Shown: positions 45,887-48,800, counted from the stretch's first letter. The stretch: DNA of 64,000 nucleotides from Bugula neritina (GCA_964035545.1 OZ037770.1:13940642-14004641), one strand, 5' to 3'. A program made the numbers and translations. The notes: generated by a model not told the origin, from the letters alone.

Positions 45887-48800
45887 ATGGATCAACATGA
45901 AGAAGTTTCTAGAAAACTACTAGAAGACAGTGATGAAGATTTAGAATCAGAGGGAGAAAGTGATTCTTCCAAGAAGCTAAATTACTTTTCACATTCTCAA
46001 GAATCCAGATTGTAAGTTTAATTTATATCCTATGATATAGAGCATAATTGTTGCTTTACTATAACCTGAACTGTTGTGTAAATTTTTCAAAGTTTATAGC
46101 TTTATTATTAAAGAAAGTTAATGCTTGAAACTAGCTTTATACATACCAAGTGTGTTTGTCTTTCAAGACTGTTTGTTACCTTGAAGGTCAGTGAAGCAAA
46201 GCTACCTTGCTTGAAAGATTTCCACATTTCCCTTTGCATGCTGTTTTTGCAACATTTAGTTTCTTTTAACCAACTGCACTAGGAATAACTGATGAAAACT
46301 AACATAATTCGGTATTTTATAAAAAAATCAAAATGATATCCTGCCCCACTATTGCTATGATATCAAAACACATGCTTTCAGAAGTAGTTCATATATATAT
46401 ATATATATATATATATATATATATATATATATATATATATATATAAATATATATATATATATATATATATATATATATATATATATATATATATATATAG
46501 TAAAATGAGTGTTTATAAAACTTTACTAGAGTGCTCTATAGAAATAAATCTAGAGCATAAATATTAGAAGAAATAAAATGAGATTTGATTAATATAATGG
46601 CATTTATTACTAGTAGTTTCGTACACAAGAACGATGTGCACTCGTCAGATAAATTAGCCACTATGATTGCTTACAACTATAAATAATGTAATATGTAAAT
46701 ATACACAGAATAAAGCTAGAAGATCAGAATATAACAAAGAGGTAGCATTGGAAGTAATTGGCTATGTTACAGCATTCTTGAGTAGAAATTTACTACTATG
46801 TCTGCATATGGATAAAAAGTCATTGCGCTTATTGAGGGAAGACAACTGTGGCTTATAAAGAATGAACTATTTTTCCCATGAGCATAGCTGACAGTTTTTA
46901 GTGATGTTGTTGTATGGTTGAGCTTTTCTGAGAATTTTCCAGGATATGGTAAAATCCAGACCTTTGTCTTTTAAGGTCCAGATGTGTTTGCTCAACTCAG
47001 TTTGCAAGCGCTTGGTTGGGTGTCTGAAGGAAGCAAGGTGGTTGTAGTATCTTGCCTTGAATGCAGTGGAGGAAATTCCTACATATGTTTCGACAGTATC
47101 GTTTGATGGGACGGATACTTTGGCCTGGTACACAATGTTTGGGGTGGTGCATTCTCCTGGAAGCGGGCATGTCTCTACATTTCTACAGTTACAGCCTGCC
47201 TGTGATATAGGGGCGGTGTTGCATTTAGTAACACTTTTGTTGTGAGCAGTGATGGTCTGCTCCAAATTTGGGCAGCAACTGTAGCTGAGTTTGAGTGTGT
47301 TTTTATTAAATATTTTGTGCAGTGGGTATTTGGTGTGGAATGTATCTTTTGTCATCTTGAGGAATATGGAGCCGATTTTCGTCTTTACATTGCGGCTATA
47401 AGGTGGGTTGTACCAGATGAATCGTCTTTGTCGGATGGGTTTGATGCTTGTATTGGTGTTGTCAGTATAGTCTTTGTATTTGAGTTGGTAATTATATCCG
47501 CTTTTGGCCAAAGCATCTTGATATTGTGGGATGGCATTGTTGAAAATAGTTTCATTGGTAGATATGTCACAAAGTCTGCGGTTTATAGATTCTGGTATGT
47601 TTTTCAGTATGCTAGGGGGATGGTTAGAGTCTTTGTGTACATACAGAGAGATGTTGTTAGGCTTAGAGTATGGTGTATAATGTTTCTTGACCAGATCTAG
47701 GGTGACATCTAAATAGTCAGTTGTCTTAATATTAACATCTATGGTGATCTTTAGACCGTGTGACTGGAATAATATGCAGAGATCTTTTTTCAGTCTTTCA
47801 GCTAGTTGTGGTTTAAGATCTGTTACTCCTAGCCCATATGCAGACATAGTAGTAAATTTCTACTCAAGAATGCTGTAACATAGCCAATTACTTCCAATGC
47901 TACCTCTTTGTTATATTCTGATCTTCTAGCTTTATTCTGTGTATATTCACATATTACATTATTTATAGTTGTAAGCAATCATAGTGGCTAATTTATCTGA
48001 CGAGTGCACATCGTTCTTGTGTACGAAACTACTAGTAATAAATGCCATTATATTAATCAAATCTCATTTTATTTCTTCTAATATATATATATATATATAT
48101 ATATATATATATATATATATATATATATATATATATATATGAACTTTGTACTTGTACCTGTACCTGCGCCTGTGCCTCGGCCTGTGGCTGTGCCTTTGCT
48201 TGTGCCTGTACCTGTACGTTGTACAAGCCATGAACTACTTTTTAACAAAAATATAAAAAATATATTTTATCTTACAGAAAGACCAAAGAGCTTCCAATAG
48301 TTTCTGCTGGATTTCTCAGTTACATAACTACTCACTGGGCTACACAGTTCATGTATGATACTTACAAAAGAGGGTTCTCAAAGGAGAATCTGTTTGATAC
48401 ACACTGGACAGACTCTTCAGAATATAACTGCAAGAGGTGAACTTTGAACTGTGGAGATATTCTTGCTAAATGAATCAATGAAACTATTCTTAATAAACAA
48501 CTTTTAAATTGAGTAATTTCAAACACTAAGTCTAAAATTTTAAGTAAACAGTAGAAAAATTGTTATCCTAAAAGTCTTAAAAGTTCACAAAAAATGCTCA
48601 ATCCTTTTGTTATGTTTAAATTATTACTAATTACCTTAATTTAGAAGGAAAATAAAAATAAAAATACGCCTCATGAAAACAAACAGAAGAGCTAACATAT
48701 TTATGGATTTTCTCTTTATTACCAGATTTCACCTTGTAGTGAACTGCTTTTATAAGCTGCCGGCAACCTGTATAGCTGTCAGAGGTTAACTAAATAATAA

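Follow-up and report, generated by a model that had tools for sequence, protein, structure and literature searches.

The 64,000-nucleotide stretch of the Bugula neritina genome analyzed here (GCA_964035545.1, OZ037770.1:13940642-14004641; hereafter the window, with positions counted from its first nucleotide) carries three tandem ABC-transporter paralogs, A, B and C, all on the plus strand. Intron 1 of copy C holds two hammerhead ribozyme motifs on opposite strands, and an earlier reading of the sequence, which we refer to as the original prediction, had proposed that they might form a device in which the hammerhead on the strand of the gene either cuts the intron or is masked by its antisense partner. 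Our analysis favors a different explanation with considerable confidence: the motifs very probably belong to a dead, head-to-head twin of a Penelope-like element (PLE), a retrotransposon, lying in a (TA)n tract of the intron, and the proposal of a switch finds no support.

Two ABC_tran domains are recognizable in the window as PF00005 matches in the exons at 53483-53818 and 60554-60850, and the nearest solved relatives of the ABC-transporter exons are ABCC5, ABCC2, a plant ABCC13 and CFTR, with the exons searched one by one rather than as a joined, spliced model. The peptide encoded by exon 2 of copy C gave no match in a PDB search, for which it is too short. From exon 1 to exon 2, copy C is laid out as follows.

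45887-46011, plus strand: exon 1 of copy C, with its ATG at 45887 and a phase-2 donor; its translation shares 83% identity with that of exon 1 in paralog B.
46012-48277, plus strand: intron 1 of copy C, 2266 nt, containing the entire insertion (from the sequence read and the paralog exon matches).
46390-46499, no strand: left (TA)n tract, part of the target microsatellite (sequence).
46500-46556, minus strand: 57-nt tail at the 3' end of the copy that bears an open reading frame (ORF), abutting (TA)n and present on a single arm only (the same tail occurs in other copies).
46557-46811, minus strand: left inverted-repeat arm, the 3'-terminal 255 nt of the ORF-bearing PLE copy (repeat search and genome copies).
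46594-46664, minus strand: type I hammerhead motif in the sense of the PLE; Rfam match at 46602-46654.
46867-47847, minus strand: remnant ORF of 326 amino acids (aa), the C-terminal part of a 706-aa PLE protein (ORF call and the full-length copies L009 and L017).
47834-48088, plus strand: right arm, an inverted 255-nt stub of an extremely 5'-truncated second copy, tailless and running straight into (TA)n.
47981-48051, plus strand: type I hammerhead motif in the orientation of the host pre-mRNA, matched by Rfam at 47991-48043 and predicted to be cut at 48037/48038.
48089-48140, no strand: right (TA)n tract, the remainder of the target microsatellite (sequence).
48278-48437, plus strand: exon 2 of copy C; its start is exact, its end approximate and set where the paralog match stops.

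Intron 1 of copy C opens with a GT donor at 46012 (GTAAGT) and closes with an AG acceptor at 48276-48277 (...TTACAG). The frames of its two flanking exons join in phase 2, and the structure mirrors that of copy B exactly; exon 2 is 90% identical to its counterpart in B (30652-30825) and 67% identical to that in A (10086-10250). The corresponding intron of copy B (30179-30665) is 487 nt long and has neither the insertion nor a long (TA)n run. These limits bear out two statements of the original prediction: that the plus-strand hammerhead lies in the sense orientation in an ABC-transporter intron, its predicted cleavage site 240 nt upstream of exon 2, and that the insertion sits in one paralog only, in that it is present in C and absent from B, the only paralogs with a locatable intron 1.

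The insertion is built around an inverted repeat whose 255-nt arms (46557-46811 and 47834-48088) are 99% complementary and separated by 1022 nt. Its minus-strand ORF remnant begins just past the reverse transcriptase (RT) motif YRDDG, includes a CxCx5C linker and the GIY-YIG endonuclease, and stops 35 aa short of the end of the full-length ORF, while its annotated ATG falls in the inverted arm, just beyond the junction. Both PLE copies in the intron are dead, since the 5' region is missing from each and the longer ORF is truncated and stops prematurely. The insertion is also young, because its arms are 99% identical to one another and the nearest genomic copy is likewise 99% identical. The unique DNA that flanks the TA tract (46381-46392 and 48141-48245) is itself partly inverted, with AAGTAGTTCA on the left (46381-46392) and TGAACTACTT at 48231-48240; TGAACT occurs also at 48141, and a degenerate run of CCTGTN/GCCTGT hexamers stretches between the two right-hand sites, 48141 and 48231-48240. 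An older fold-back might account for this flanking inversion, as might a further small insertion into that microsatellite.

The 1.5-kb unit in the window matches at least 127 places in the 216-Mb genome at 86-100% identity, most of which reach further 5'. In the full-length copies (L009 and L017) the unit is ~2.43 kb and contains the single 706-aa ORF, in which the RT precedes a C-terminal GIY-YIG endonuclease. A protein search with this ORF returns at least 2498 relatives. The best 120 of these are mostly ~700 aa long, many of them on ~2.4-kb contigs, and among the matches listed the only ones named by organism come from a bivalve and a bryozoan. An alignment with 19 relatives reveals, as invariant or consensus features, RWK, DKT, YRDDG, CxCx5C, GIY...YIG and CxxC...E...N...CxH; strictly invariant across the 20 sequences are YRDDG, the GIY...YIG residues, C564, C566, C572, C664, C667, E670, N684, C693, R694 and H695. 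At the N-terminal motifs the consensus of the relatives is RWK and DKT, and the full-length copy of this genome reads RWA and DKS. Language-model neighbors of the protein are annotated as GIY-YIG, RVT_1, HTH_animal and DUF8422. Craig et al. (2021, PMC8557442) describe Hydra-clade PLEs by RWK, DKT (in place of DKG), CxCx5C, CxxC/CxH, a unit of less than 3 kb, canonical hammerheads and insertion into (TA)n. In the Bugula family, both ends of the window copy and nearly all other ends examined abut (TA)n, the exceptions being tandem junctions. By its motifs, its <3-kb unit, its (TA)n target and its canonical hammerheads, the family thus appears to be a Hydra-clade PLE, and the minus-strand ORF with its PLE motifs agrees with the original prediction of a Penelope-like element antisense to ABCC copy C. 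Just downstream of one full-length copy, on contig C4, lies a 297-aa ORF rich in C2H2 zinc-finger repeats (L009:2995-3888, plus strand), which is unrelated to the element.

The two hammerhead motifs are one and the same 71-nt sequence, located at 46594-46664 on the minus strand and at 47981-48051 on the plus strand with all core bases present, just as first described. In the plus-strand copy, C3 to A9 read CUGACGA (47997-48003) and G12 to A15.1 read GAAA (48025-48028); the cleavage site is GUA, with U16.1 at 48036 and A17 at 48037, and scission is predicted between 48037 and 48038. Helix I consists of 6 bp, a 2-nt bulge and 8 further bp, and is open, which gives the motif a type I topology, whereas helix II has 7 bp and starts with a G10.1-C11.1 pair. 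Stem III, ACUA-C-UAGU, cannot form a closed helix within one molecule, because four pairs would leave a sterically impossible 1-nt loop. Two hammerhead copies could, however, pair their stems III with each other between molecules, so the caution in the original prediction that this stem may need dimerization was justified.

A search of a 1.9-kb stretch with Rfam model RF00163 (Hammerhead_1) matches both copies across the full model with 28.3 bits and an E-value of 2.6e-4. This score is below the gathering score of 34. Scanned as a whole at the gathering threshold, the 64-kb window yields no hammerhead, and a whole-window scan by E-value misses the two motifs owing to its filters. A search of the whole genome with RF00163 finds nothing at E <= 0.01 and its controls are likewise empty; this null is uninformative either way, because a 28-bit match cannot reach significance in 216 Mb. 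What the whole-window E-value scan does return are weak look-alikes of isrG, a bacterial small RNA model, at 22296-22650 on both strands in copy A, with 33 and 24 bits where the gathering score is 100; they are almost certainly an artefact of composition or of a palindrome.

The low score and a stem III too short for a monomer are what could be said for the idea that AT-rich repeat DNA has by chance produced a sequence that only resembles a hammerhead. We consider this idea scarcely credible, as it is contradicted by counts, by structure and by placement. The loose pattern CTGANGA N8-30 CGAAAC occurs at exactly two sites in the 64-kb window, these two, where 0.02 would be expected by chance, and the pattern CTGAYGAGT N8-25 ACGAAAC occurs 333 times in the genome as against three times for a reversed control. 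The genomic occurrences include at least three hammerhead sequence families in which stems I and II are held by two-sided changes, such as C-G to G-C and A-U to C-G in stem II, or AUUUAU/AUAAAU against AUCACC/GGUGAU in stem I. These compensatory changes were judged by eye and by script over seven sequences, without a formal statistic; a MAFFT alignment of the three families misplaced stem III, and the helices were parsed by script instead. Across the three families stem III is either a palindrome (ACUAUAUAGU, ACAAAUUUGU) or a near-palindrome (ACUACUAGU), and the position of the motif in the 3' terminal repeat of a PLE agrees with the literature (PMC8557442, PMC4209133). By these sequence comparisons, the motif is a genuine PLE hammerhead that belongs to the element.

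Variation within the first family, to which the window copies belong, offers no usable covariation: over 26 arms the changes are scattered and also affect a few core positions, which is the pattern that neutral decay would produce. A fourth hammerhead variant (L061) was excluded, as it looks like a decayed copy of the second family. That second PLE hammerhead family (stem II GUGCAG-UUUA-CUGUAC, stem III ACUAUAUAGU) shares (TA)n tracts with copies of the first; its motif lies, for example, ~50 nt past a short end at about position 1482 (minus strand) of L020, and also in L037 and L047-L049. Different PLE families therefore reuse the same microsatellites.

The inverted arm of the window insertion is explained by the way in which the family ends. 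Copies of the family terminate in one of two forms: a "long" end, in which a 57-nt tail (...CATTTTAC) is followed by (TA)n, and a "short" end, which stops at ...TTCTAATAT, ~57 nt earlier, and is then followed by (TA)n. Where copies stand in tandem, the tail leads on to the 5' start of the unit that follows. Of the two window copies, the one on the minus strand ends long (46500-46556), and the stub on the plus strand ends short (48080-48090). Among 71 ends (loci L001-L060) we found 26 head-to-head pairs, every one of which has its 3' ends outward and combines one tailed with one untailed end; were end types assigned independently, such a result would arise about once in 10^8 trials. The tail may be carried by either the long or the short body of a twin. 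End-to-end spacing within pairs ranges from 128 nt to 3.5 kb, and many twins are therefore tiny fold-back stubs. The inverted arm is thus the standard landing form of this PLE family and not a later rearrangement. The original prediction, in which an inversion had flipped one ribozyme into the host transcript, was right that a minimal type I hammerhead now lies in the host pre-mRNA; the flip as a special rearrangement does not survive, with 26 of 26 twins alike. The locus is ordinary in this respect as well, because any twin that falls in a transcribed region will have one of its hammerheads in the sense orientation.

The tail (46500-46556, minus strand) resembles the 5' start of the element (L009:410-460, and L017), with TAGAGCACTCTA and TTTATAAAC common to both. 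It may be a partial duplicate of the element 5' end, given that it runs directly into the 5' start in tandem copies.

Published work suggests how such a twin could arise. PLE anatomy in print already includes copies that are inverted and 5'-truncated, as well as tails confined to one end (PMC8557442), and purified PLE protein cleaves and extends both DNA strands, with reverse transcription beginning at two internal sites that bracket the tail (Frangieh et al. 2024, PMC11167929). On the strength of this in vitro work we infer a two-ended priming mechanism. In a single event, a Hydra-clade PLE would have entered intron 1 of ABCC paralog C at a (TA)n microsatellite, and the two target ends left by the cut would each have been extended from the 3' region of the element RNA. 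The outcome would be two 5'-truncated copies head to head: a 1334-nt minus-strand copy with the 57-nt tail, and a 255-nt tailless stub on the plus strand. Each would bring with it the minimal type I hammerhead of the family, whose near-palindromic stem III is thought to work only in dimers, and in the host pre-mRNA the two arms would pair into a hairpin of 255 bp, with the sense hammerhead buried inside. Splicing most likely takes out intron 1 of copy C as usual, and equilibrium predictions together with the literature argue for no effect of the insertion on the host gene.

On this last point the original prediction differs, with its proposal that the sense hammerhead could cleave intron 1 co-transcriptionally unless the upstream arm pairs with it. 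Several observations speak for the proposal: the core is intact, it is in the sense orientation 240 nt before exon 2, and the complementary arm is transcribed first. Competition between an intronic ribozyme and splicing also has precedents, such as the CPEB3 ribozyme (PMC10919898). Folding predictions, however, always return the masked state. The arm-arm duplex is predicted at -422.8 kcal/mol against -17.0 kcal/mol for the local hammerhead fold, and in the host-sense RNA (the full 1532-nt stretch) all 71 of the 71 hammerhead bases are paired with the upstream arm. Masking is also predicted for transcripts ending at 48043, 48051 and 48060, and the first 157 nt of the arm are transcribed before the hammerhead, such that the mask helix can probably start to form beforehand. 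At equilibrium the sense hammerhead is predicted to be fully masked, and no sequence element able to toggle between the masked and unmasked states was found at the locus.

Stem III of the sense hammerhead cannot close in a monomer, and with the loose pattern no second sense copy that might serve as a dimer partner in cis was found in the 64-kb window, which leaves the gene without one. Cervera and de la Pena (2014, PMC4209133) detected no cleavage in vitro by metazoan PLE hammerheads as single motifs and low activity as dimers, and proposed that these motifs act as dimers. For an active PLE, no transcript or read was seen to start or end at the hammerhead site, and ribozyme mutants inserted normally (PMC11167929). 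Introns that are cut by a hammerhead in vivo are nonetheless spliced at normal efficiency, only fast ribozymes aborting splicing (PMC2995048, citing Dye 2006 and the Bentley group). Finally, the same arrangement is present at every twin insertion, so it is not a feature of copy C. Taken together, these points lead us to set aside the cleave-versus-mask switch, which we now regard as highly improbable.

The same folding prediction suggests another possible consequence. The 255-bp intronic hairpin could be a substrate for Dicer or for adenosine deaminases and give rise to small RNAs against the PLE family or to altered processing of copy C. The near-perfect duplex dominates the predicted fold, and the youth and abundance of the PLE family mean that there are matching targets; animals are known to make small RNAs from hairpins of inverted transposon copies. 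Dozens of similar twins occur, however, so the locus is not special, and any such effect would be a by-product and not a built function. As an account of the locus we judge this unlikely. A small-RNA or editing substrate is nevertheless the least unlikely of the host effects, and one generic to twins in transcribed regions.

Not every result favors a dead PLE twin with no bearing on the gene. Pfam searches with the 326-aa and 706-aa ORFs returned only noise and recognized neither the RT nor the endonuclease, and PDB sequence searches with the ORF or with the 20-sequence profile matched no solved structure; the assignment of the protein to PLEs was made from motifs, the published description and language-model neighbors. 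The hammerhead score is also under the RF00163 gathering score, as given above. Folding energies, in turn, describe equilibrium, and the local hammerhead fold could form transiently during transcription. The insertion may have some effect on copy C.

There is a slim prospect that the intronic twin matters to its host after all, through trans-dimer cleavage or through defence small RNAs, and that the one-tail rule is a regularity not previously stated. In certain tissues the 255-bp mask might be opened by helicases or by RNA editing, after which the sense hammerhead would cut copy C pre-mRNA as a dimer formed in trans; more plausible than this is that hairpin-derived small RNAs silence the still-young PLE family. 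If the latter were true, twin insertions in genes would be a built-in source of defence RNAs.

On the explanation we prefer, a dead head-to-head PLE twin, the single locus is of little weight: it adds another dead copy to a retrotransposon type already described, and the ribozyme ends up in a host intron automatically, through the way in which PLEs insert. Opposed pairs of minimal hammerheads beside (TA)n in this genome are best read as Hydra-type PLE twins and not as regulatory devices. Apart from the twin, the introns of all three ABCC paralogs contain a repeat of ~80-140 nt in both orientations, seen as cross-matches in translated searches at 4265-4396, 38688-38834, 51000-51113, 54028-54117, 54588-54730 and 60358-60518, which looks like a miniature mobile element.

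A close parallel to the Bugula family is found in the Hydra-clade PLEs of Craig, Yushenova, Rodriguez and Arkhipova (2021, PMC8557442), with which it shares CxCx5C, the CxxC and CxH motifs around E and N, insertion into (TA)n and a canonical hammerhead core in the terminal repeat, along with partial tandems, inverted 5'-truncated copies and a single-end tail. The Bugula copies differ in having RWA and DKS where the Hydra-clade elements have RWK and DKT, although RWK and DKT are present in relatives of the Bugula element, and in a tail of 57 nt as opposed to the 30-40 nt usually quoted.

At the level of the ribozyme, the motif resembles the metazoan PLE hammerheads of Cervera and de la Pena (PMC4209133) in its type I topology, its location in the terminal repeat, its orientation in sense to the element, its G10.1-C11.1 pair, its long helix II, and its very short palindromic or near-palindromic helix III through which two copies can pair. 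Unlike those hammerheads, it lacks the extra base between A9 and G10.1, it has a long helix I of 6 and 8 bp on either side of a 2-nt bulge, and the palindrome of its stem III is centered on an odd base (C), which leads to a C-C mismatch in the dimer. With the vertebrate intronic ribozymes (hammerheads, and the CPEB3 motif that resembles that of hepatitis delta virus; PMC10919898), it has in common a sense motif in the intron of a protein-coding gene. The vertebrate ribozymes are conserved across species, stable as monomers and without an antisense partner, whereas the Bugula motif is a young repeat copy of a dimer-dependent type that is predicted to be fully masked.

The comparison with Frangieh et al. 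(2024) concerns integration itself. Extension of two strands and two start sites, as reported there, would explain both the head-to-head pairs and the two end types seen here; the element they used is a lizard element of the Poseidon clade. The Bugula pairs go one step further, as each arm corresponds to one start site in 26 of 26 cases, a rule not stated in the passages of that work considered here. This strict one-tail rule may reflect the mechanism by which PLEs integrate, a regularity that has hitherto had no explicit statement, and the genome thereby gives clean support to the integration model with two start sites and two strands that came from in vitro work on a distant PLE.

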